From: Malacoraja senta
Lineage: Eukaryota
DNA length: 64,000 nt
NCBI GenBank assembly: GCA_038087875.1
Contig: CM075984.1
Coordinates: 43,524,001 to 43,588,000 of the forward strand
Reading direction: 5' to 3'
The position numbers were made by a program, and so were the translations under genes. The notes under the pieces are model-generated. The model made no database searches. It saw only the letters and a program-made list of their open reading frames with translations, and was not told where the DNA came from. Positions 6,440 through 60,800 of this stretch are shown here, piece after piece (position 1 is the first letter of the stretch; every line of letters starts with the position of its first letter).

Positions 6440-8889
6440 TCACACCCGCTGAGTTTCTCCAGCATTTTTGTCTACCTTTGATTTTCCAACATCTACAGTT
6501 CCTTCTTAGACGTTTTGCGGTGATGGCTGCATCTGCGGTTCCTTTCTGTTAGGGGGGGGGGGGGAAGAGTCCTGGCCCATGGCGGCTCCTGATAAGTGAT
6601 ATGTTCCCTCCGCGGGTGCTGCCTTGCCCGCTGAGTTCCTCCAGCACTCTGTTTTTGTTTGGCTCTGTAGTTGAAGGTGGACCCCCCCTGTGTCTACCTT
6701 CAACTTCCTGTCTGTGGTGGCTCAGCGGACGGGCAGGGGCTCTGGGGAGAGGGTTGCGGTTTTGGTTGAGACCCTTCTTCAGACAATCACAAGTACTCTC
6801 ACCGACGAGAGTTCAGTTCAGTCTGAAGAAGGGTCTTCTCTCCAGAGTCGCTGCGCTGCCTGTCCGGCTGAGCTACTCCAGCTTTTGTCTATCTTCCATT
6901 TCAGAGTCAGATCAAATTTCTCATGGGGGGCTTATAGCGTCTACCCCCCCCCCCCTCACCACCCCTTCCTTCCCAACCTCAGCCTCACGGACCCGAGCGT
7001 ACCCCTAGTTCCTAAAATCTATTTCCATCACTGATTGAAATTTATATGTAACACCACATTGCAGGTTCTACAGAGATTTTCGTGGTTTCTGTAGATATGA
7101 CTAAAAGACTAAGGGACATCGGCAGAACATATTTGAGTGGCAGTAAGCAGAAAAGGAGAAAGGTGCATTAGATAAGTATTTCAGCAAAACTATCTCAGAA
7201 AATGCAGAAGAGCAAGTGGAGCCACAACACAGTGAAGATGACACTAAAGGAAGCCAGTCTGAAGAAGTTATGCAAGACGATCAAAGTGGGAATTCATTTA
7301 CGGTAAGTGAGATCGCCCATTTCGAAAGTGTTGAATTTGACAAACAAGGAAACTTTCCTGTTGACATGACTTCTGGTGCCTCTGAGGCAAGGGAGAACGG
7401 GAATTCAAAATCTGCCAGTTTTGTAGAATTAACAGAAGATCCTGCAACATGGCCAGAAATGATGGATCAGAGTGTCAGGGACTATTTAGTGAAAAAAGGA
7501 CCACCTACAATTATAGCAGAATTTTTCCCCAAGAATGACAGTGGATCACGTTTTTCAAAATTTCACTGCAAAAGAAAACTGCCAAATGGTGAAATTGTAG
7601 ATCGTCCATGGCTAATATACTCTGCACCAACTGATAAAATCTTCTGTTACTACTGCAAGCTTTTTGATAATAACACAGCAATTGCACTTGCAAGTTGTGG
7701 TTTTAATAACTGGCCGAACATTCATACAAGACTAGCTGAGCTTGAGAACTCAAAAAAGCATTTGCAATCTATGCTCAGTTGCTGTGAACTACAGCAAAGA
7801 TTATCTACTGAAAAAACTATTGATGAAGTGGTAGAAAAACTAATCGGACAAGAAGCAAAATGCTGGCATCAAGTTTTTGAGCGACTGGTAGCCACTGTAC
7901 AGTTCCTGGCAGAAAGAAACTTGCCATTCCGGGGATCTGAGGAACACATAGGAACACCACATAATGGAAATTTCCTTGGTGTTATTGACTTGCTCGGAAA
8001 ATTTGATCCAGTAATGCAAGACCATCTGCGAAAAATCCAGAATAAGGAAATACATGATCATTATTTAGGAAAAAGAATCCAGAATGAGCTTATTAATATA
8101 ATGGGTCACGCTGTTCTACAGGAAATCATTTTGCGAATCAAGGCTGCTAAGTATTTTGCAATAATTCTTGACTGTCCTCCTGACATCAGCCATCAGGGGC
8201 AAATGTCGATGGTAATTAGATATGTAGCTGATGGTGTACAATCAAATGCTCCAGCAGGAATATATGAACATTTCATCAAGTTTTTAGTGGTGGAAAGTAG
8301 CACAGGTGAAAATTTGTACAACACCCTTCTACATGAACTTGAAACATTAGGGCTGGATGTTGAAAATATCCGTGGACAAGGGTATGATAATAGTGCCAAT
8401 ATGAAGGGACACACCTCAGGTGTGCAGGCACGACTTCTACAGAAGAATTCAAGAGCTTTCTTTACACCATGCGCATGTCACAACTACAACCTAGTTTTGG
8501 GAGACATGGCCAAGACATGTCCAGATGCAATGACTTTCTTTGGAACTCTGCAGCGTATTTACACCATTTTTGCATCATCTACTAAAAGATGGACTGTTTT
8601 TAGAAAACATGTGACAGGTCTGTCCATGAAACCTCTCTCTGAAACACGATGGGAATGTAGAATGGAAAGTGTCAAAGCTGTACGGTACCAAGCTGCTGAA
8701 GTTTGTAATGCACTAGAAGAGTTAGCAGAAAACACTGATGACGCTCAAACAAAAAGCGATGCTGAATCGTTAGTCAGTCAAATGAGAGATTACAAGTTTC
8801 TGGTCTCACTATTTTCTGGCACTCCTTACGCTTTCAAGTAAATTTTGTGAGTAAGGAACTTCAGAGTGATACCATGGATGTTGCTACAT

Positions 8890-10521
8890 AGATACATAGA
8901 TACATAGAAAATAGGTGCAGGAGTAGGCCATTCGGCCCTTCGAGCCTGCACCGCCATTCTGATCATGGCTGATCATCCAACTCAGTATCCCGTACCTGCC
9001 TTCTCTCCATACCCCCTGATCCCCTTAGCCACAAGGGCCACATCTAACTCCCTCTTAAATATAGCCAATGAACTGGCCTCAACTACCCTCTGTGGCAGAG
9101 AGTTCCAGAGATTCACCACTCTCTGTGTGAAAAAGTTTTTCCTCATCTCGGTCTTAAAGGATTTCCCCCTTATCCTTAAGCTGTGACCCCTTGTCCTGGA
9201 CTTCCCCAACATCGGGAACAATCTTCCTGCATCTAGCCTGTCCAACCCCATAAGAATTTTGTACGTTTCTATAAGATCCCCTCTCAATCTCCTAAATTCT
9301 AGCGAGTATAAGCCAAGTCTATCCAGTCTTTCTTCATATGAAAGTCCTGACATCCCAGGAATCAGTCTGGTGAACCTTCTCTGCACTCCCTCTATGGCAA
9401 TAATGTCCTTCCTCAGATTTGGAGACCAAAACTGTACGCAATACTCCAGGTGTGGTCTCACCAAGACCCTGTACAACTGCAGTAGAACCTCCCTGCTCCT
9501 ATACTCAAATCCTTTTGCTATGAAAGCTAACATACCATTCGCTTTCTTCACTGCCTGCTGCACCTGCATGCCTACTTTCAATGACTGGTGTACCATGACA
9601 CCCAGGTCTCGCTGCATCTCCCCATTTCCTAATCGGCCACCATTTAGATAATAGTCTGCTTTCCTGTTTTTGCCACCAAAGTGGATAACCTCACATTTAT
9701 CCACATTATACTGCATCTGCCAAACATTTGCCCACTCACCCAGCCTATCCAAGTCACCTTGCAGTCTCCTAGCATCCTCCTCACAGCTAATACTTCCCCC
9801 CAGCTTAGTGTCATCCGCAAACTTGGAGATGTTGCCTTCAATTCCCTCATCCAGTTCATTAATATAAATTGTAAATAGCTGGGGTCCCAGCACTGAGCCT
9901 TGCGGTACCCCACTAGTCACTGCCTGCCATTGTGAAAAGGACCCGTTTACTCCTACTCTTTGCTTCCTGTTTGCCAGCCAGTTCTCTATCCACATCAATA
10001 CTGAACCCCCAATACCATGTGCTTTAAGTTTGTATACTAATCTCTTATGTGGTACCTTGTCGAAAGCCTTCTGAAAGTCCAGATACAACACATCCACTGG
10101 TTCTCCCCTATCCACTCTACTAGTTACATCCTCGAAAAATTCTATAAAATTCGTCAGACATGATTTACCTTTCGTAAATCCATGCTGACTTTGTCCAATG
10201 ATTTCACCACTTTCCAAATGTGCTGCTATCCCATCTTTAATAAGTGACTCTAGCAGTTTCCCCACTACCGATGTTAGACTAACTGGTCTGTAATTCCCTG
10301 TTTTCGCTCTCCCTCCTTAAAAAGTGGGGTCACGTTTGCTACCCTCCAATCCTCAAGAACTACTCCAGAATCTAAAGAGTTTTGAAAAATTATCACTAAT
10401 GCATCCACTATTTCTGGAGCTACTTCCTTAAGTACTCTGGGATGCAGCCTATCTGGCCCTGGTGATTTATCGGCATTTAATCCATTCAATTTACCCAACA
10501 CCACTTCCCGACTAACCTGGA
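8890..10521 (-). mobile_element. Young 5'-truncated CR1/HER1 LINE inserted in the hAT transposase
   Basis: Intact RT frame, (ctatgtat)n tail, tacat duplicated at 8885-8889 and 10522-10526. Confidence 0.93.
8982..10265 (-). CDS. CR1 reverse transcriptase, C-terminal 427 aa (5'-truncated)
   Basis: QHGF, YLDFQKAFDKVPH, GVPQGSVLGP, KFADDTKL, RPHLEYCVQFWSP. Confidence 0.9.
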   Translation of the reverse strand: MGKLLESLIKDGIAAHLESGEIIGQSQHGFTKGKSCLTNFIEFFEDVTSRVDRGEPVDVLYLDFQKAFDKVPHKRLVYKLKAHGIGGSVLMWIENWLANRKQRVGVNGSFSQWQAVTSGVPQGSVLGPQLFTIYINELDEGIEGNISKFADDTKLGGSISCEEDARRLQGDLDRLGEWANVWQMQYNVDKCEVIHFGGKNRKADYYLNGGRLGNGEMQRDLGVMVHQSLKVGMQVQQAVKKANGMLAFIAKGFEYRSREVLLQLYRVLVRPHLEYCVQFWSPNLRKDIIAIEGVQRRFTRLIPGMSGLSYEERLDRLGLYSLEFRRLRGDLIETYKILMGLDRLDAGRLFPMLGKSRTRGHSLRIRGKSFKTEMRKNFFTQRVVNLWNSLPQRVVEASSLAIFKRELDVALVAKGIRGYGEKAGTGY

Positions 10522-27254: not shown

Positions 27255-27640
27255 CTCTGGAATTTAGAAGGATGAGCAGGGATCTTATTGAAACATAAGA
27301 TTGAGTGTTTGGACACGCTAGACGCTGGAAACACGTTCCAGATGTTGGGGAAGTCCAGAAACAGGGGTCACAGTTTAAGGGGTAAGCCATTAGAATGGAG
27401 ATGAGAATTTTTTTTTTCAGTTGTGAATCTGTGGAATTCCCTGCCTCAGAAGGCAGTGGAAGCCAATTCTCTGTATGATTTCATGAGAGAGTTGGATAGA
27501 GCTCTTAAAGATAGCAGAGTCAGGGGATATGGGGAAAAAGCAGGAACGGGGCACTGAGTGCGGATGAACAGCCACGGTCACAGTGAATGGCGGTTCTGGC
27601 TCGAAGGGCCGAATGGTCTACTCCTGTACCTATTGTCTAT
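27255..27640 (+). mobile_element. CR1/HER1 LINE 3' fragment
   Basis: ctggaatttagaaggatgag...gaagggccgaatggtctactcctgtacctattgtctat. Confidence 0.85.
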
Positions 27641-27818
27641 CAGAAACACTCTTCAGGAGTCAGGTGTGGATTTGTGAATGTCCACTGTGCGCAGACTTCA
27701 TGAACAGAAATACAGAGGTTACACTGCAAGATGCAAACCACCGTTAGCTGCAACAATAGGATGGCCAGGTTACAGTTTGCCAAGAAGTACTTAAAAGAGC
27801 ACCCACAGTTCTGGAAAA

Positions 27819-27872
27819 GGGGTGGGAGATTGCAACCTTCTCGTGGTCCGCCCTGTTTCGACAAATGCAATC
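27819..27872 (+). ncRNA. Minimal HDV-like ribozyme (predicted)
   Basis: P1 GGGGUGG/CCGCCCU (G1.U wobble), P2 GAUUGCA/UGCAAUC, P3 ACC/GGU, L3 UUCUCGU, GU, UUCGA in place of P4, J4/2 CAAA with catalytic C at 27862. Confidence 0.85.
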
Positions 27873-27962
27873 GACCCGGCGTGCACAATCAAATAAGATC
27901 AAATAGAACAAGTTGTCCGACAACTTTAGGCTGTGCACGCCATACGCAAGAAGAAGAAGAAG
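27819..27962 (+). mobile_element. 144-bp ribozyme-headed short retroposon (family B) inserted in the Tc1 transposase
   Basis: TSD agttctggaaaa (27807-27818) / agttctagaaaa (27964-27975); (AAG)5 tail; no Pol III boxes; 5' end coincides with G1 of an HDV-like fold. Confidence 0.88.
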
Positions 27963-29186
27963 TAGTTCTAGAAAAAGGTCTTGTGGACAGATGAGACGAA
28001 GATTAACTTACATCAGAGTGATGGCAAGAGCAAAGTATGGAGGAGAGAAGGAACTGCCCAAGATCCAAAGCATACCACCTCCTCTGTTAAACACAGTGCT
28101 GGGGGTGTTATGGCCTGGGCATGTATGGCTGCTGAAGGTACTGGCTCATTTACCTTCATTGATGATACAACTGCTGATGGTAGTAGCATAATGAATTCTG
28201 AAGTGTCTGCTCAAGTTAAAAAAAAATGCCACAACTCATTGGCCGGCAGCTCATTCTACAGCAAGACAATGATCCCAAACATACTGCTAAGTAACAAAGG
28301 AGTCTTTCCAAAGCTAAAAAATGGTCAATTCTTGAGTGGCCAAGACAATCACCTGATTTGAACCCAATTGAGCATGCCTTTTATATGCTGAAGAGAAAAC
28401 TGAAGGGGACTAGCCCCCAAAACAAGCATAAGCTAAAGATGGCTGCAATACAGGCCTGGCAGAGCATCACCAGAGAAGGCGCCCAGCGACTGGTGATGTC
28501 CATGAATTGCAGACTTCAAGCAGTCATTGCATGCAAAGGACATGCAACAAAATACTAAACATGACTACTTTCATTTCCATGACATTGCTGTGTCCCAAAC
28601 ATTATGGTGCCCTGAAATGGGGGGACGGTGTATAAATACTGCTGTAATTTCTACATGGTGAAACCAAAATGTATAAATATGGCCTTTATTAAAATCTGAC
28701 AATGTGCACTTTAACCACATGTGATTTTTTTTGTATTACAAATCTCAAATTGTGTAGTACAGAGGCAAATAAATAAATGATGGGTCCTTGTCCCAAACAT
28801 TATGGAGGGCACTGTACTTTCACTCAATCTTTGCTTGTTTCACATAAGATTCACATCATTCAAAGCTCTGTACTTCTACAGCAAATATCCAACAAACTGC
28901 TGGTCTAACCTCTGCAGTTAATATTCTGCTCTCAAAGATAGTCTTCAGAATTCTCTAAAATTGGAAGTTATCAGTGGCGACTTTGCATCATCAGAGGTCA
29001 ACAAAGAACATTCATCAGCTTTCAAAGTTACACCAAAGAACATGTGTTCTAAGCTGGCAATGTTGTTGGACCCACTGCTTGCGAGGAAATGATGTTGCTT
29101 TGAGCAAGTCTGAAGGAAAATGGAGCTTGTACAGGTTAAAAAAACTCATCTTTGAGTCCTACATTCAACCCAATAAGCGTTTCTAA

Positions 29187-35475: not shown

Positions 35476-35693
35476 GGTGAATCATTATTGTCCTGAGCCA
35501 GCGGGGACGCCGCCTTCTCTCTGCCGGGGCCGCCGCCTCCTCCTCCCGGCCCGGGACGCCGCTTCGTGCCGCCGCCGCCTTCTCTCTGCTCGGGTCGACG
35601 ATAACGGTGGTGCCGCCGCCGCCGGCTACTCCCAGCCCGGGTCAACGCTCACGGTGCTGCTCGAGCCGCCGCCGCCGTCGCCGCCTACTCCCA

Positions 35694-35786
35694 GCCCGGG
35701 ACGCTGCTCGAGCCGCTACACACTCCGGGCCCGGGACGCTGCTCGAGCCGCTACACACTCCGGGCCCGGGACGCTGCTCGAGCCGC
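35694..35786. repeat. 35-bp GC-rich tandem repeat (about 2.6 units) in the presumed 5'UTR
   Basis: Unit gcccgggacgctgctcgagccgctacacactccgg repeated head to tail; related diverged units at 35625-35693. Confidence 0.9.
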
Positions 35787-38534
35787 CGCCGCCGCCACCA
35801 CCACCACCAGTGACCGGGAGAAGAGCAGCTGCACTGAATCGCGCGGGCACTCACTCCGCCGCGATCAATTACTATTAATCTTCCCGCACAAGAACGAGGA
35901 TGCCTGTCCTTCGCTTTTTAATATTTCCTCTGGCCCTACCGCCAGCACCAGCACGACACCCCCTTTGACCCCACCTCTCCCCTTTCGCCCAATCGCGCTG
36001 GGTGCATTCACTTTGCTCGAATGCAGTGCAGTCACGCTGCTTTCCTCGGCGCAATGTTGAAATTTTACAATTGCCCATGCCTGCAACGCGTGGGGAGACT
36101 ACAATATCGCGAGGAATGTAACAGCAGAAACACTACACTGCTTTACCGAAGATACTAGAGCCTTCTATGATCTTTGGTATTTACCCTCCAGTACTCGAGG
36201 GTTTCCAATCTGTAAGGCCAGGATATGTGTAGGTGCACGGGAAGGAATTAGACCATTCAACAGTTCGAGTCTGTCGAAAATGCCTGAAATGTATTTAAAA
36301 TCTATTTAACAGACTTACATCATGAAGCTAAATAAACTTGCCCATCAAAATCACCATGATGAGGATTTAAATTGGACTGAGAAAGAACCAATGACAAATA
36401 CAGACAATGAGTAAAATACCTTTTTACTATATATATGTGTGTGTGAGTGTGTGTATATATAGATCTATACTATATATATAATCTATTAGAAAGAATTAAT
36501 GACAAATGCAAACAATGACAAAAATATCCCTTTGCTACATGTCTAAATGTTTGCCCTGCTCCGAAAACTTTTCCTGCTTTAACACAAGGTCATTGCTAAT
36601 GAAGATAAGGCCAAGGAGGATTTCAACCCTGACCTTGAAAACAAACATCTGGACATCCTCCTCGTGACTTCAAAATAATTGTGGTAAAGGTGTGATTGGC
36701 AAATGGTGGGTGGTGGGTGGTGTGCTAGGTGTGCTAGGTGTGCATAGTAAAAGCTAGTGCTAAGGCAGTACTCTTCCTGAAAAATACCTGGAACATGCCT
36801 CATCATAGACGCATTGTTTTGTAAAAAATACTAACAAAATGCCTTGTGGTAACATCCCCATTCTGGTATCAGCACATGTTGGGTTATATCAATGTCTGAG
36901 GGACAGGTCATAAAGATGCTCTGATCACACATGCCATGACATGTAAAGACTGCTGGACTGGTCTCAACCAAATCTACTGTATTATCTCTATAACCCTAAT
37001 CCTAATCCATATCCGTCTGTATCCAAGACTAGGAAGGCCGTCAATGCCCACTAGAAGAAACAGTTCTAAGACCTCCTCAACCATGAATCTGTTTTTAATA
37101 TAAGCATACTTCACTCCGTCTTACAACAAACTATTCAGACCAACCTTGCCACTGTCTGACCAACATAAGTCAAAAAGACCATAGGGTCAGACAGCTGCAA
37201 AGAGATCCAATATTTATCACTTGAATAGTTGCTGGCGTGAAGAACACAGAAGTATTTTTACTGCATTTTATATTTAGACATTGAAAGAAGGATAAGAACT
37301 GGGGACAAAACATTAGGATTATATTTGAGTGTGGTGACTTAGGTAAAGGGAAATGTGGACCTATTAAAGATAAATATTAGAAGTCAATGTTCAGTAGAAT
37401 AATTGACATTTATTATTATTAATTCATTTTCATTTCATTGTGAAGAAAGGAGACAAGGTACCAGCAGTAAAAGTGGGCCAAAAAATAAGTAAAAGGAAGA
37501 TCAAGTAGATTTTAATAGTGTCAAGGTAAAAAATGAATGGAACTTAAGGTAGATACTTGAAGGACCTGTTGATTATTTTGTTATAAATAAATTTTAGAAG
37601 TCGCCAAGATTGTGAATTGTGCTTTGGATTGGAACATACTATTACTTTACACAGAATGGAAAGAAAAACAAGTAAATGTTGCTCTGTTAATTTAGCTTTG
37701 ATTGTGAAGAAGTTACAGGAATCATTGATTCCTTACTGAATTACTGAGCTCTTGGACAAGAAGGAGTTGAACATAATTTATTTTTGACTTGCAATGGGTT
37801 GTTCATGTGTGTTTAAGCCAGTTTAATTTTTTGAGATGGTCACTGTGATGGATAAGGAAATGTCTGTGGATATTGACTCTGGTTATCCTACATTTGAAAA
37901 GGCACAACGTGCTGGAGTAACTCAGCGTGTCAGATAGCATTTCTGGAGAACATTGATAGGTGACGTCACTTATCCATGTTCTCCAGAGATGCTGCCTGAC
38001 CCGCTGAGTTATTCCAGCACTTTGTACTTTTTTTTCTAAACCAGCATCTGCCGTTCCTTGTATCTACATACCCTACATTTCCCAGAAGATACGATGAACA
38101 CAGATAAAAGCAGGAGGGGGTTATTTGATGTGGTGGTTAATTGGCTATGTGGTCAAAGGCAAAAGATGGAAGTAAAATGAATATACACTAATTTTTGAAT
38201 ATGATAAATAAATGTTTTTTGGGGAACTGTACTAGGGCATCACAGGCAAATGACGATGAATAGTTAAAATCAACAACATTATATGTACACAAACCATATG
38301 ATAACTGTCAAAGCAATTTACAGCAAAATCTCATGTAATATTCAGGGGTACTCAGAATATTAAAAGAATTTCATTTTTTTCTCAGTCATAACCCCAAGTG
38401 GTCCAGTGCAGAGTTGAATGTCAGTGTACCGTGTCTGCTGCCCATCTGTTATGGCAGTAGACAAATTGAAGTTGGTCTTGGTCCTTACTGAGGTAGCAGT
38501 TGATTTACATCATAACCAGCCTTCATTAGAATGG

Positions 38535-39794: not shown

Positions 39795-40072
39795 CTTCAG
39801 TTTAGAAATACAGCGTGGAAACAGGCCCTTCGGCCCATCGGGTCCGCGCCGACCAGTGATCAACCATACACTAGTAATGTCCTGTAGACTGGGGACAATT
39901 TACAATTTTTACCGAAGCCAAATTAACCTGCAAACCTGTACGTCTTTGGAGTGTGGGAGGAAACCAGAGCACCCGGGGAAAACATGCAAACTCTGTACAA
40001 ACAACACCCTTCGTCGGGATCGAACCCGGGTCTCTGGCGCTGTAAGGCAGCAGCTCCATCGTTGCGCCATCG
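39795..40072 (-). mobile_element. tRNA-derived SINE (HE1-like)
   Basis: Minus strand gatggcgcaacgatggagctgctgccttacagcgccagagacccgggttcgatccc (B box), with a CR1-like tail gatgggccgaagggcctgtttcc. Confidence 0.85.
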
Positions 40073-40428: not shown

Positions 40429-41618
40429 GATAGATTAAGAGTTTCCACCTGAACTGTCGACAAATTATTCACCTCCCTTACTCCAAAGACACTGCTCAAT
40501 CTGCTGTGTTCCTCCAGCAGATTGTTTGTAGCTGTAATTTTATTAGTTGGTAGAACACAGAGATCTGTTTTGATCTAGTGCAATCAAAACTAAATTGTGT
40601 TAAAAGTTGATCCCATATTAATACTATCACCGAAAGTGAAGGGGGTAAAGCTTGTGGGTTAGGGCTAGTTGATGATAAGATTCAAATACTTATACAGCGA
40701 GGGGGTTTATTTGAGAGTGAAGAAACAGTTCAGAAACAGTTAGACAGGTACGTGGATTGGGTAGGTTTAGAGGGATATGGGACCAAACGCAGGTAGGTGG
40801 GACAAGTGTAACTGGGACATGTGACCGGTATGGGCAAGTTGGGCCAATGGGCCTGTTTCCACGGTGTATGACTGTGACTCTATGAAGGAAGGGAAAGAAT
40901 TGCAGGCCGTGGTTGGAGCGATCCCAGGCAATTGATCGGCTCCGATGTTAAGTCCACGCCCCGCGGATGGGCTCAAAGTCAGTTCGAGGAAGTCTCCAGT
41001 TCCATCAATGTTAGGCCGCAGAGCGACCGGAGATGCGACCTGGAAAACAATCGCATCTCCGGCAAGGTAAGAGACTGAAAAAAAGTTTCCCCCGAACCTC
41101 ACCCTCCACATAAAACAAACCGGAGAACATTTACACAAACTTTAAAAACACGCTAAAAATAAAAACTTTACTATGCATTTTACAGAAATCTCTGGGGTCA
41201 AGGAAAGAGCGATCACTTCGCGGCCCACATCACATACCAGGAATTTTCCTTGGTGGCAACCATTCTGCACAACCCTGACCACAACCCTAATTCAACACCA
41301 AATCAATTGGATTTTGCACTACTATGATTAATCTATGTACATTTGGGTGTTTTTTGCACTATCGATTTATTAGTAATTTTGAATAATTGATAATCTATTA
41401 CATATTTATTTGGTTTTGCTTTTGTGGTTCACATGTCTGTAAAGTTGCAGCAAGTAGAGCTTTCATTGTTCTGAAGATAGATACAAAATGCTGGAGTAAC
41501 TCAGCCGGACAGCATTTTGTGTCTTTCTTCGGTGTATACCAGCATCTGAATTCATTGCTCCTTTACATATCCAGTGCATTCTTGAATTTTGAATCTTGAA
41601 GTTTTCAGATATTTCTGT

Positions 41619-41789
41619 CTTCTTCTTATCAAGTCCACATCATAAGATTAGAAATTGTTCAGCCAGAGCTGAACACACTTCTTGGCATCTGCAAACAGTT
41701 GTGTCTTGCGCTTCTTGTGCTTCTTGTGCGTGGTGGTAGAAAGATTGGTGGAAACAGGGCCGCGACGTGAACGCTCTTTCCTTAACCCC
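41619..41789 (-). mobile_element. 171-bp ribozyme-headed short retroposon (family A), copy 1
   Basis: TSD cagatatttctgt at 41606-41618 and 41789-41801; minus-strand tail gat(aag)3; 5' end is an HDV-like fold. Confidence 0.88.
41738..41789 (-). ncRNA. Minimal CPEB3/HDV-like ribozyme (predicted), copy 1
   Basis: P1 GGGGUU/GGCCCU, P2 GGAAAGA/UCUUUCU, P3 GCG/CGC, L3 UUCACGU, GU, UUCCA in place of P4, J4/2 CCAA with catalytic C at 41748. Confidence 0.82.
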
Positions 41790-42427
41790 AGATATTTCTG
41801 TAAAATGCATAGTAAATTGTGTAGACACAAAAAGCTAGTTTGTAGCTAGTTTGAGTAACTCAGCGGGACAGGCAGCATCTCTGGAGAGAAGGAACGGGTG
41901 ACGTTTTGGGTCGAGACCCTTCTTCAGATCTAGAAATTGTGTAGATGGCCGTAGAAAATTAGGAAGGGACATGGTCAGATTAAGTGAGTATGCAAAATTA
42001 TGACAACGTTCTAAAGAAATATATTGAATTCCACGTTGTATTCAAGAAAGATGACAGGGAATTTCCTTCACGAAGTTCAAGAGTAGTAAGCAGCAAAGGA
42101 ATTTGAAACCACTGAAACCTCTCAGGTTGTACTCACAAGAGATAATTTGGCGATTGCAATTATTGCAGGTCTTATGTAAAACCAATTTGAGTAAATGCTG
42201 CCTCAGGCATAAAGGACCTGGTTTGGTTACAGGGAGAGATTTACATTCAGTTCTTAGCATTACACCTAAGGGAAGAACTGTTCGGAGGGGGATAGACACA
42301 AAATGCTGGAGTAACTCAGCGGGTTTTGCAGCATCTCTGGAGAAAAGGAATAGGCGACGTTTTGGGCCAGACACTTCTTCAGACTAACCTTGGAGGATTG
42401 ATCTTGGAAGGGGTGCAGATATCCCAA

Positions 42428-42627
42428 TGTTAATTCTGGCTAAAACAGAGCAGCCATAGCACCAAAATTTAGTGAGGACTTATGTACTGTTAGACCATTT
42501 TGGTCAAGTTTGATGTGCTCTGCAGAAGTAAGACAAGCTGCTGAATGGTGTCAGCAAGTCTGGGGATCAGATCAGTGTTGCAGAGAATGAATTAGACATC
42601 TGTAGAGTTCTTACAATGTGTAAAATG
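42428..42627 (+). repeat. Extra 200-bp copy of the ERV LTR U3 5' end
   Basis: tgttaattctggctaaaacagagcagcc...tgtgtaaaatg, truncated at the duplication junction. Confidence 0.92.
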
Positions 42628-43574
42628 ATGATAAGATTCAAATACTTATACAGCGAGGGGGTTTATTTGAGAGTGAAGAAACAGTTCAGAAACAGTTAGA
42701 CAGGTACATGGATTGGGTAGGTTTAGAGGGATATGGGACCAAACGCAGGTAGGTGGGACAAGTGTAACTGGGACATGTGACCGGTATGGGCAAGTTGGGC
42801 CAATGGGCCTGTTTCCACGGTGTATGACTGTGACTCTATGAAGGAAGGGAAAGAATTGCAGGCTGTGGTTGGAGCGATCCCAGGCAATTGATCGGCTCCG
42901 ATGTTAAGTCCACGCCCCGCGGATGGGCTCAAAGTCAGTTCGAGGAAGTCTCCAGTTCCATCAATGTTCGGCCGCAGAGCGACCGGAGATGCGACCTGGA
43001 AAACAATCGCATCTCCGGCAAGGTAAGAGACTGAAAAAAAGTTTCCCCCGAACCTCACCCTCCACATAAAACAAACCGGAGAACATTTACACAAACTTTA
43101 AAAACACGCTAAAAATAAAAACTTTACTATGCATTTTACAGAAATCTCTGGGGTCAAGGAAAGAGCGATCACTTCGCGGCCCACATCACATACCAGGAAT
43201 TTTCCTTGGTGGCAACCATTCTGCACAACCCTGACCACAACCCTAATTCAACACCAAATCAATTGGATTTTGCACTACTAAGATTAATCTATGTACATTT
43301 GGGTGTTTTTTGCACTATCGATTTATTAGTAATTTTGAATAATTGATAATCTATTACATATTTATTTGGTTTTGCTTTTGTGGTTCACATGTCTGTAAAG
43401 TTGCAGCAAGTAGAGCTTTCATTGTTCCGAAGATAGATACAAAATGCTGGAGTAACTCAGCCGGACAGCATTTTGTGTCTTTCTTCGGTGTATACCAGCA
43501 TCTGAATTCATTGCTCCTTTACATATCCAGTGCATTCTTGAATTTTGAATCTTGAAGTTTTCAGATATTTCTGT

Positions 43575-43745
43575 CTTCTTCTTATCAAGTCCACATCATA
43601 AGATTAGAAATTGTTCAGCCAGAGCTGAACACACTTCTTGGCATCTGCAAACAGTTGTGTCTTGCGCTTCTTGTGCTTCTTGTGCGTGGTGGTAGAAAGA
43701 TTGGTGGAAACAGGGCCGCGACGTGAACGCTCTTTCCTTAACCCC
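43575..43745 (-). mobile_element. Family A ribozyme-headed retroposon, copy 2 (made by the tandem duplication)
   Basis: Identical to 41619-41789 with the same flanks. Confidence 0.88.
43694..43745 (-). ncRNA. Minimal CPEB3/HDV-like ribozyme (predicted), copy 2
   Basis: Same sequence as 41738-41789. Confidence 0.82.
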
Positions 43746-44383
43746 AGATATTTCTGTAAAATGCATAGTAAATTGTGTAGACACAAAAAGCTAGTTTGTA
43801 GCTAGTTTGAGTAACTCAGCGGGACAGGCAGCATCTCTGGAGAGAAGGAACGGGTGACGTTTTGGGTCGAGACCCTTCTTCAGATCTAGAAATTGTGTAG
43901 ATGGCCGTAGAAAATTAGGAAGGGACATGGTCAGATTAAGTGAGTATGCAAAATTATGACAACGTTCTAAAGAAATATATTGAATTCCACGTTGTATTCA
44001 AGAAAGATGACAGGGAATTTCCTTCACGAAGTTCAAGAGTAGTAAGCAGCAAAGGAATTTGAAACCACTGAAACCTCTCAGGTTGTACTCACAAGAGATA
44101 ATTTGGCGATTGCAATTATTGCAGGTCTTATGTAAAACCAATTTGAGTAAATGCTGCCTCAGGCATAAAGGACCTGGTTTGGTTACAGGGAGAGATTTAC
44201 ATTCAGTTCTTAGCATTACACCTAAGGGAAGAACTGTTCGGAGGGGGATAGACACAAAATGCTGGAGTAACTCAGCGGGTTTTGCAGCATCTCTGGAGAA
44301 AAGGAATAGGCGACGTTTTGGGCCAGACACTTCTTCAGACTAACCTTGGAGGATTGATCTTGGAAGGGGTGCAGATATCCCAA

Positions 44384-45182
44384 TGTTAATTCTGGCTAAA
44401 ACAGAGCAGCCATAGCACCAACATTTAGTGAGGACTTATGTACTGTTAGACCATTTTGGTCAAGTTTGATGTGCTCTGCAGAAGTAAGACAAGCTGCTGA
44501 ATGGTGTCAGCAAGTCTGGGGATCAGATCAGTGTTGCAGAGAATGAATTAGACATCTGTAGAGTTCTTACAATGTGTAAAATGCATAGCGTCGATTGGAT
44601 CAATGCAAACTAAGTGTACATAGTATAAATAATGTTGCGGGACGGTTACCCTGTTAATTGTTGATTGGTTTAAATGTTGACCCAATTAATTGTTGATTGG
44701 TTGAAATGTTGAGCCTTGGAGGAACTGTTCGAATCCCAGGGAAAAAGTTGCACTATTCATTTGTGTTGGCTTCCTTCTGGAAGCTTCTTTCAAATACAAT
44801 GTATTTAAGATTATGTTATTGGGCTGGGGAGTTGTCAATTATATAGTGTTGTAATTAATATGTTTGATTGGATTGTACAGAGACCACCTCCATGTAGGTC
44901 GGCCCCTCAAGGTTCGGGGACCTATAAAAGGCAGCCTCCACGGTGTCCTTTGTCGATCTTCTGGAAGAGTGCTTGGGACTGCGTGACCTTTTGTAGTGTC
45001 TCTGCTTGCACGAGGCTAGAGGGCTTGGCCAAGCAGATACAAGGATCGAACCCGCGGTGGTTTAGGTATTGTATAGGGGAATTTGTTGTGTTATCCAAAA
45101 ATAAAGTTTAGTTCAAGTGCTTCAATCAGTATTTTATTGACTGAACTAGACTGGGGGGAAGCTTAGAAAGAGCATATTTACA
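44384..45182 (+). repeat. 5' LTR (799 bp)
   Basis: tgttaa...tttaca; TATA-like ctataaaagg near 44922; aataaa near 45100. Confidence 0.93.
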
Positions 45183-57837: not shown

Positions 57838-60800
57838 ATGCAAGACGTCAATAGGAAAATTGGGGGTGAAGGAATTAAATTCTGTAGTTGGAATGTTAAG
57901 GGAATTAATGAACCAATCAAGAGAGATAAAGTATTAGCTCATTTAAAATCACTTAAAGCAGATATAATATTTCTCCAGGAAACACATCTTAAAAAGGAAG
58001 AACAACATAGATTGAAAACAAAATGGATTGCTAAAGCGTATCACTCTTCTGTCTCACATAAATCTAGAGGGGTTGCAATATTAATTCGTAAAGGTATACC
58101 CTTTAAACATATATCAACGATAGAAGATATTGAAGGCAGATATATTGTATTAGTAGGGGAGTTATATTCAAAAAAAGTAACTCTCCTTAATGTGTATGGA
58201 CCAAATTTTGATAGCCCCCTGTTTTTTAAGAGAATACTTAACACTATCACGGAATGTACACAACATAACTTAATTATCGGTGGAGACTTAAATTGTACAC
58301 TGGATGCTTACTTGGATAGATCATCAACTCAAAGAAAATTAAAATCTCAGTCAAGTGAATTTCTAAATTCATATATTAATACTACCAACATTAAGGATGT
58401 TTGGAGAATTGAAAATCCATCTGGTCGAGAATACTCATTTTACTCACCAGTGCATAAAACTTACTCAAGGATAGACTACTTCTTAGTAGACTCTAAACTT
58501 ATCCAATTTACCTATAACTCGCAATATCATAATATTATAATATCAGATCATGCTCCACTAACATTTATGATTAAACTAAATGGAATGACCGAGACACAGT
58601 CACAATGGAGACTTAACCCCCAAATCTTAAAAGAAAAACTATGTAATGAATATCTCGTAAAACAGATTAATATGTTCTTTGAGGCTAATGATAGCCCTGG
58701 AATCTCTGCCTCCCTTCTTTGGGAAACATTTAAAGCATTTGTGCGAGAAGCATTAATCTCTTCGCAATCATTTCTTAACAAAGAGAATAGTGCCAAACAA
58801 CAGACTTTGGAAACGGAAATAAGGCAATTAGACATAGAAAATGCAATAGCACCATCTATGGCAAAACACAATAAAATTGCAGTACTGAAATATAAGTTAA
58901 ACAAGATATACTCAGACCAAGTTATAAAACTATATCAACATACAAAACAATTAAACTTTGAATTTGGTGATAAACCACAAAACCTATTAGCGCGTCAACT
59001 TCGTAAACTGGACGGGGAAAAAACAATTTACAAAATTAGATCAGACAAGGGAGAAATATTAACACTGCCTAAAGATATTAATGATAGATTTTTACAATAC
59101 TATCAAAAACTGTACTCATCTAAAACGACACAACAATCAGCAGGAATGGAAACATTTCTACAGAAATGTAACCTTACAGGTTTAGATCAGAAAGAGAGAG
59201 AATCACTAGATGCAGAAATTACGGTAAAAGACATCGAAGAGTCAATTAGATCTTTAAAAAACAGAAAGGCCCCAGGTCCTGATGGTCTAAGCTCTGAATT
59301 TTATTTAAAAAATTACGATCTGATTTCTCCACGCCTACAGACACTATATAAATACGTTTATACTCAACAGAAACTCCCAGAAACTCTAAATGAATCTACA
59401 ATCATACTTATACCAAAAACGGATAAGGATCCTGAAGACCCAGGTTCATATAGAGCAATAGCTCTCTTAAATACTGATCAAAAAATATTAACCAAAATCC
59501 TATCTCATAGATTGAGCTTAGTGATTAACAAATTAATACACCCCGACCAAACTGGTTTTATTCCAAAACGTTACTCATTTTATAATTTGAGAAGACTATT
59601 CAATATTATATATACAAATAGAATTCCTAATGCAGACCTAGCAATTATATCATTAGATGCTGAAAACGCATTTGACCAGGTAGAATGGTCATATTTATTT
59701 TCGGTAATGGAAAGATTTCATCTTGGAGAGAATTACTGTACATGGATTAAACTGTTATACTCCAATCCAACAGCTAGAATATTAACAAACCAAATGTTAT
59801 CAGTTAAATTTAATCTTTCTAGAGGTTGCAGACAAGGATGTTCACTATCTCCACTATTATTTGCTCTTGCCATTGAACCATTAGCAGAAAGCGTTAGAAC
59901 CCATCCAGGAATACATGGGTACAACACTAGAGATACAAGGAATAAAATGTCCTTATATGCAGATGATGTACTAATATATATTACAAAGTTAGAAACTAGT
60001 ATTCCAAATCTATTAAATCTAATAACTCAATTTGGTCAGTTCTCAGGATATAGAATTAACTGGAATAAAAGTGAAATCATGCCAATAACAAAATTCAATT
60101 TAAATACATTACAACAATCCCCTTTTAAAATAGTTAAAGATAAACTTAAATATTTAGGAATCAATGTAACTAAGACATAGACCTCTTTATTTAAACTAAA
60201 TTTTCCACCCTTACTTAATAAATTACACAAGAATATTCAGTACTGGAAAACAATTCCCATTTCAATGCTTGGTAGAATTAATGCTATAACAATGATCTTC
60301 TTACCGCAACTACTGTACCTATTTCAATTAATTCCGATATATATCCCAAAAAACTTTTTCAAAAAAGTCGACTCCATTGTTACAAGCTTTATCTGGGATT
60401 ATAAGAATCATAGAATAAGTAAAAAACCTTTATGTAAGTCAAAGAGCAACGGAGGTTTGGCTTTGCCAAATTTCTTATTTTATTTTTGGGCAGTCCATAT
60501 TAAAAACATAAATTTCTGGCTGGAAGAAATGGATCAATATCCAGATTGGTTAAGGATGGAAAAGGATTTGAAATTGGTTCGATTATATTTGCTCCCACAA
60601 AACTGCATAAAAAAACCTATAAGGAAAACCCTATAATACATAGTGGAATATGAATTTGGAAACAATTAAAGAAAGCTTTAAAACTGAATAAAAGAGTTAC
60701 AACAGAATCATGGACTGCACTCAAATAATTTTTTCAGATATCTACAAATTAGAGATTATGTTAAATCTAATACACAAGTATATAGGACTAGGGAACCAGA

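Follow-up and report, generated by a model that had tools for sequence, protein, structure and literature searches.

Retroelements that lack an open reading frame (ORF) and move by carrying the 5′ ribozyme and the 3′ end of a long interspersed nuclear element (LINE) are an established design, exemplified by the R2 SIDEs and by NARTc and RIME. In Drosophila, the ORF-less R2 SIDEs keep a 5′ hepatitis delta virus (HDV)-like ribozyme together with a 3′ recognition end, and their 5′ end is cut from a co-transcript (Eickbush & Eickbush 2012, PMC3414825). NARTc, RIME and SIDER are abundant, dispersed partners of L1Tc/ingi, whose first ~77 nt form an HDV-like ribozyme common to the autonomous LINE (PMC3185411, PMC4035085). 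Bipartite non-autonomous derivatives, in which a LINE 5′ end is joined to a LINE 3′ end, occur in RTE, Ingi, Vingi and R2 and have been linked to 5′ ribozymes, and Vingi stands outside the six clades listed as ribozyme carriers (Kojima 2018, PMC5786205). Here, we analyzed a 64,000-nucleotide stretch of the skate Malacoraja senta (GenBank assembly GCA_038087875.1, contig CM075984.1, positions 43,524,001 to 43,588,000 of the forward strand; hereafter the window), in which a 145-bp element of a family that we call family B most probably represents an ORF-less, non-autonomous, non-long-terminal-repeat retroposon built from a predicted self-cleaving head of 54 nt and a LINE-recruiting tail.

Minimal HDV-like ribozymes were reportedly described by Riccitelli et al. 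in 2014. Nearly 99% of the minimal forms are found in phages and their origin has been called open, the accompanying search of eukaryotes having covered human, mouse and protists only (PMC10879173). Among them, 56-nt theta ribozymes, which lack P4, undergo Mg-dependent cleavage in vitro, which is fast and is abolished by a C-to-U change (PMC10879173), so that a core of this type can be catalytic in the absence of P4.

A high-copy retroposon with an exact 5′ limit

The family B copy spans 27819–27963 and lies, like all of its parts, on the forward strand, inserted in a decayed Tc1/Sleeping-Beauty-like transposase gene (27650–28300). The flank of this relic, translated over 27975–28205, matches the SB100X/Sleeping Beauty transposase (PDB 5cr4_A, E 3.9e-15, PDB sequence search), and a Pfam search with the 77-aa flank translation gave no match. 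The copy is bounded by a 12-bp target-site duplication with a mismatch at 1 of 12 positions, agttctggaaaa on the left (27807–27818) and agttctagaaaa on the right (27964–27975), and it ends in an (AAG)5 microsatellite at 27948–27962 followed by one T (27963), a tail in which the number of repeats differs between copies. An earlier examination of this DNA from its letters alone, referred to below as the sequence-only reading, had described a 144-bp insert in a Tc1 relic; the location holds, and counting the terminal T brings the length to 145 bp. The 12-bp duplication with one mismatch and the (AAG)5 end, which that reading had also reported, are both read directly in the sequence. It had further placed the edge of the duplication exactly at the first nucleotide of the head, G27819 (G1), and the two do adjoin directly, with no ambiguity because the right copy is followed by A instead of G.

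Paralogous Tc1 copies that lack the insert provide the corresponding empty sites. Contigs join 27813–27818 straight to 27970–27975, insert-free paralogues run from 27818 into the sequence after 27975, and loose contig ends at 27818 and 27964 continue as uninterrupted transposase sequence; the insertion in the Tc1 relic and its 12-bp duplication are therefore real. Just upstream of the relic, at 27500–27640, lies a different and extremely high-copy repeat, with a summed contig depth of up to 10 million, several times the depth of the retroposon.

The 145-mer is present in the sequence runs of eight organisms. For the analysis of the family, assembled contigs of two species (organisms A and C) were aligned to 27785–27995, and 238 contigs of organism A and 285 of organism C diverge exactly before 27819. 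The flanks that precede this position, with a median length of 255 letters in organism A and 111 in organism C, agree with their consensus at only 0.34–0.35 and are thus unrelated to one another. The 5′ ends of the copies are accordingly gathered at G1 rather than scattered, the outcome on which the sequence-only reading had staked its claim in advance. Other well-supported positions of this kind are restricted to 27964, which is the signal of the empty sites, and, in organism C, to 27897, where a different sequence stands ahead of the common tail. On the 3′ side, the diverging contigs place the limits of the copies at 27957, 27959, 27960 and 27962, corresponding to varying AAG counts. A target-site duplication, a 3′ microsatellite tail and many dispersed copies with unrelated flanks, all found here, characterize a LINE-mobilized retroposon.

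The body and tail domain (27873–27947), detected as an inverted repeat by BLAST, is predicted by both the minimum free energy (MFE) and the centroid fold to form a long stem (27878–27887/27932–27941) around a hairpin (27910–27916/27920–27926). Contig depth is 2–4x higher over the head (27825–27872) and the tail (27905–27952) than over the middle (27873–27904), suggesting that related families draw on the head and the tail as reusable modules, as would fit a bipartite LINE derivative. A BLAST comparison of the insert with the 64-kb window revealed no second family B copy. In organism C, some contigs join 27937/27946 back to 27819/27822 with 3–7 letters between, suggesting the existence of head-to-tail dimers without the AAG tail in a related species.

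The HDV-like fold of the 54-nt head

Descriptor scans and a pair table showed that the first 54 nt of the element (27819–27872) fit the fold of a minimal P4-less HDV-like ribozyme, with a predicted cut 5′ of G27819. The 5′ strand of P1, GGGGUGG (27819–27825), pairs at 7/7 positions with its 3′ strand CCGCCCU (27848–27854), starting with a G1·U pair, and is followed by GA in junction J1/2 (27826–27827), as assigned by segmentation of the fold. The 5′ strand of P2, GAUUGCA (27828–27834), pairs at 7/7 positions with UGCAAUC (27866–27872), thereby forming the pseudoknot, while P3 (27835–27847), made of ACC (27835–27837) and GGU (27845–27847) with 3/3 pairs, closes the loop L3, UUCUCGU (27838–27844), in which C27840 pairs with G27855 in P1.1. 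The place of P4 is taken by 27855–27861, comprising the J1/4 G (27855) and the linker UUUCGA (27856–27861), for which a UUCG loop closed by U-A can be drawn, and J4/2, C-A-A-A (27862–27865), begins with C27862, the predicted catalytic cytosine equivalent to C75. All 17 helix positions are therefore paired (P1 7, P2 7 and P3 3) in the canonical HDV order, giving the nested double pseudoknot of the HDV-like class with the catalytic C first in J4/2, and the sequence-only reading, which had seen every element of the HDV fold in order in these 54 nt, was borne out.

To match a strict descriptor, a sequence had to contain G1·U, P1 of 7 bp, P2 of at least 7 bp, P3 of 3 bp, L3 of 7–8 nt, a linker no longer than 12 nt and C-N-R-A. 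On scanning both strands, the sole match in the window was the one at 27819, and 40 dinucleotide-preserving shuffles yielded 0 matches; with a chance expectation of less than 0.025 per window, the fold is far beyond chance. As a control, the 18-letter pattern of the unpaired core common to two skate families was found in 44 metagenome contigs, which are microbial-looking and were used solely as a negative control, and none of the 44 had P1, P2 and P3 together, indicating that the helices are no by-product of the core motif. A looser descriptor also matched at 40009 on the minus strand, a candidate that was rejected: it lies inside a tRNA-derived short interspersed nuclear element (SINE; 39800–40060, minus strand), and the expected chance rate of that descriptor is 0.5 per window.

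A second skate family, family A, is represented in the window by an element at 41619–41789 and a copy at 43575–43745, both on the minus strand, with its own 12–13-bp duplication, acagaaatatct(g), and an (AAG)3 tail; the number of its copies is doubled by a tandem duplication of 1,958 bp (40670–42627 and 42626–44583, 99.7% identity). The head of family A has the same architecture as that of family B, with a P1 of 6 bp and the linker UUUCCA. Between the two families, 8 base pairs are changed on both sides and remain paired (5 in P2, 2 in P3 and 1 in P1), and 15 of the 18 unpaired core letters in L3, the J1/4 G, the linker and J4/2 are identical. Compensatory changes of this two-sided kind are the hallmark of a conserved RNA structure.

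The linker is also where an ordinary RNA polymerase III (Pol III) SINE, with an unrecognized small-RNA-derived head and an incidental resemblance to the HDV-like drawing, comes into question. The UUCGA of family B faintly recalls a B box, and the size, the copy number and the LINE-type tail are SINE-like, but family A swaps the B-box-like letters (UUUCCA) while the fold is kept. Classical SINEs, moreover, have heads descended from tRNA, 7SL, 5S or snRNA and carry an internal Pol III promoter; ARAGORN found no tRNA-like head in the retroposon, Rfam yielded no small RNA, and the low chance expectation given above speaks against an incidental fold, making a Pol III SINE very unlikely. That an arbitrary 54-mer bordering an insertion should fit the descriptor by accident has a negligible probability: rare chance fits will be met by a reader who scans many windows, and Rfam is silent on family B, but neither the shuffles nor the 44 core-pattern controls produced the fold, which moreover starts exactly at the 5′ limit of the family, covaries with that of family A and has a core identical to that of theta ribozymes. 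With the shuffles, the 5′ limit, the covariation and the theta core taken together, chance resemblance is already effectively refuted.

Comparison with theta and CPEB3 ribozymes

Segment by segment, family B shares the 52–56-nt P4-less architecture of theta ribozymes. The core of the theta UC/GA subclass reads ACC/U/UC/NCGU/GGU ... GA/UUUCGA/C-N-A-A (Kienbeck et al. 2024, PMC10879173, supplementary sequences), and family B is identical to it in P3 (ACC/GGU), in L3 (U-UC-NCGU), in the UUUCGA linker and in C-N-A-A. P3 and L3 are also identical to those of the phage theta ribozyme L048:3134-3191, whereas P1 and P2 are wholly different from those of the phage theta ribozymes and yet paired, according to the pair table. 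Family B thus has the 5–8-nt linker in place of P4, the fixed U, NCGY in L3, C-N-R-A(N) and the length of ~52–56 nt that mark theta ribozymes, but not their complementary 2-nt P1.1 (CC/GG, UC/GA or GC/GC): it is without the A that follows the J1/4 G in theta, leaving UC opposite G and U and a P1.1 with one Watson-Crick pair. The contexts differ as well, theta ribozymes residing in phage genomes and usually abutting the 3′ end of a tRNA, whereas family B is a vertebrate retroposon in a Tc1 relic with no tRNA.

Variation between the copies was read from the contigs of organisms A and C. Differences in the head that reach at least 4% include CpG transitions at 27849/27850, both of which keep P1 paired (as G·U or U-A), and CpG transitions also occur at 27859/27860 in the linker. 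The predicted catalytic C27862 is replaced by T in 2–4% of contigs and kept as C in 96–98%. By contrast with this conserved position, 27863 is the most variable site of the family (G 38–49%, T 23–30%) and the only highly polymorphic site of the head, as expected because it is the free N of C-N-R-A. At 27841 (L3 position 4), A is overwhelming in one contig tally and the site is absent from the difference list of the other, a discrepancy that is immaterial because A and U both occur there in active theta ribozymes.

Several observations weigh against a self-cleaving head in a LINE-mobilized element. The P1.1 of family B, on which the sequence-only reading was silent, consists of a single Watson-Crick pair, C27840–G27855, with U·U at the second position, and the ~120 theta sequences compared have two P1.1 pairs, one with a G·U wobble (PMC10879173). 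The exact skate-type core has 0 matches in IMG/VR, versus five loci for the phage GA form. Rfam gave no match to family B, either by cmscan of 27600–28200 at E up to 10 or, with gathering and E-value thresholds, over the entire window, a silence that is expected because the models include P4 and ignore the pseudoknot. The copies of family B in the contigs of the two species are too alike to show any covariation within the family, and at −0.92 the element as a whole has a non-significant MFE z-score, in a model that leaves pseudoknots aside. One RNA-library contig spans G1 with 141 nt upstream, which is indecisive, being either uncleaved RNA or DNA. Finally, the window contains no partner LINE, its reverse transcriptase genes at 57838–60180 and at 8982–10265 (minus strand) having neither an (AAG)n tail nor an HDV-like head.

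The head could be an HDV-like descendant that kept its shape and lost its cutting, acting as an internal promoter, as a 5′ protective knot or as a structure for LINE recognition or priming, with the sharp 5′ end arising from precise initiation. The reduction of P1.1 to one Watson-Crick pair, the absence of P4 and the uncut RNA-library contig are in line with such a loss, and the Pr77 head of L1Tc/NARTc offers a precedent of an HDV-like head that is both promoter and ribozyme (PMC3383444). However, all letters of the catalytic core are kept in two families with completely diverged helices, and cleavage is fast in the theta ribozymes, which belong to the same core class and likewise lack P4. In the CPEB3 ribozyme, which is active, P1.1 is as weak as in the skate forms, again with a single Watson-Crick pair and a U·U. 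We consequently regard a head that has lost cutting as distinctly unlikely and favor the self-cleaving one.

The CPEB3 ribozyme (Rfam RF00622) differs from family B as a single-copy intronic ribozyme with a full P4, and its model, to which family B has no match, gives the head of family A 32.3 bits (E 1e-4 for the whole window), below the gathering score of 35. A run of 19/20 letters (P3-L3-P3′-P1′) is common to family A and the Rfam CPEB3_ribozyme consensus, and the CPEB3 ribozyme and family A are alike in L3 (UUCACGU) and J1/4 (GU). Relatives of the family A head, now decayed, occur at 41182–41250 and 43138–43206, both on the plus strand, scoring 25 bits on CPEB3_ribozyme, with the partner of G1 and the catalytic C changed and a longer insert at the place of P4. 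Some 27 nt of the flank upstream of them (tttactatgcattttacagaaat.tct) also occur, inverted, at the family A copies of the minus strand, which could stem from the same target repeat being hit twice at the same position or from an old inverted duplication.

Proposed mobilization and the partner LINE

For the self-cleaving retroposon, we infer catalysis by the head, a dependence on read-through transcription and the involvement of a LINE, and the following sequence of steps may be envisaged. A copy would be transcribed as part of any longer RNA, in which the 54-nt head would fold as a minimal P4-less double pseudoknot and cut the chain immediately 5′ of G27819, with C27862 as the putative general acid. 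This cut would create the exact 5′ end of the element and leave a compact knot there. The reverse transcriptase of a LINE that carries an endonuclease may then recognize in trans the 3′ domain, comprising the long stem, the hairpin and (AAG)n, and the LINE would copy the RNA into a staggered nick by target-primed reverse transcription, yielding the 12-bp duplication. The sequence-only reading had proposed a promoterless, SINE-like element that excises itself from host transcripts; the high-copy family, the ends at G1, the fold and the lack of a tRNA-like head agree with this proposal, but the label SINE-like is better replaced by ORF-less bipartite non-autonomous LINE (Kojima 2018, PMC5786205).

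Within this class, R2 SIDEs are site-specific for 28S rDNA, low in copy number, equipped with a full-size ribozyme including P4 and dependent on a LINE with a restriction-like endonuclease, whereas the very numerous copies of family B are dispersed, end in (AAG)n between 12-bp duplications and do without P4. NARTc, RIME and SIDER resemble family B in design and differ from it in their protist hosts and in a longer head that is also a proven promoter; Ingi, the partner clade of these trypanosomatid elements, is the sister clade of Vingi.

Of the two reverse transcriptase loci in the window, the one at 57838–60180 (plus strand) is an intact-looking LINE ORF of 780 aa with an apurinic/apyrimidinic (AP)-endonuclease and a reverse transcriptase domain. 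The other, at 8885–10265 (minus strand), is a reverse transcriptase fragment of 427 aa, with an 8-nt tandem repeat, TACATAGA x3 (8885–8908), at its 3′ side, forming a CR1/L2-style tail. Elsewhere in the window, 35500–35810 forms a GC-rich block (GC 0.53 for 34–36 kb) with several tandem repeats of 21–47 bp and GCC/CCA triplet runs.

In the literature searched, we came across no paper that describes HDV-like ribozymes from retroposons of skates or sharks, or minimal ones from eukaryotic transposons, nor a P4-less theta-type ribozyme heading a very abundant vertebrate retroposon, and the P4-less vertebrate version of the design appears to be undescribed. It is conceivable, if doubtful, that the HDV-like cores of the skate heads, of the phage theta ribozymes and of the CPEB3 ribozyme of mammals form a single lineage, in which minimal HDV-like ribozymes would be modules for 5′ processing that are native to a vertebrate LINE group (possibly Vingi), and the CPEB3 ribozyme an exapted retroposon head. 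If the partner is a Vingi-type LINE, the finding would bear on why gene-writing constructs retain the 5′ untranslated regions of LINEs of this type (PMC13708176). The near-threshold match of family A offers a concrete, testable source for the CPEB3 ribozyme, which has so far been known only from mammals. With the predicted head of family B, minimal HDV-like ribozymes would gain a clear eukaryotic job, that of determining where a mobile RNA of 145 nt begins.
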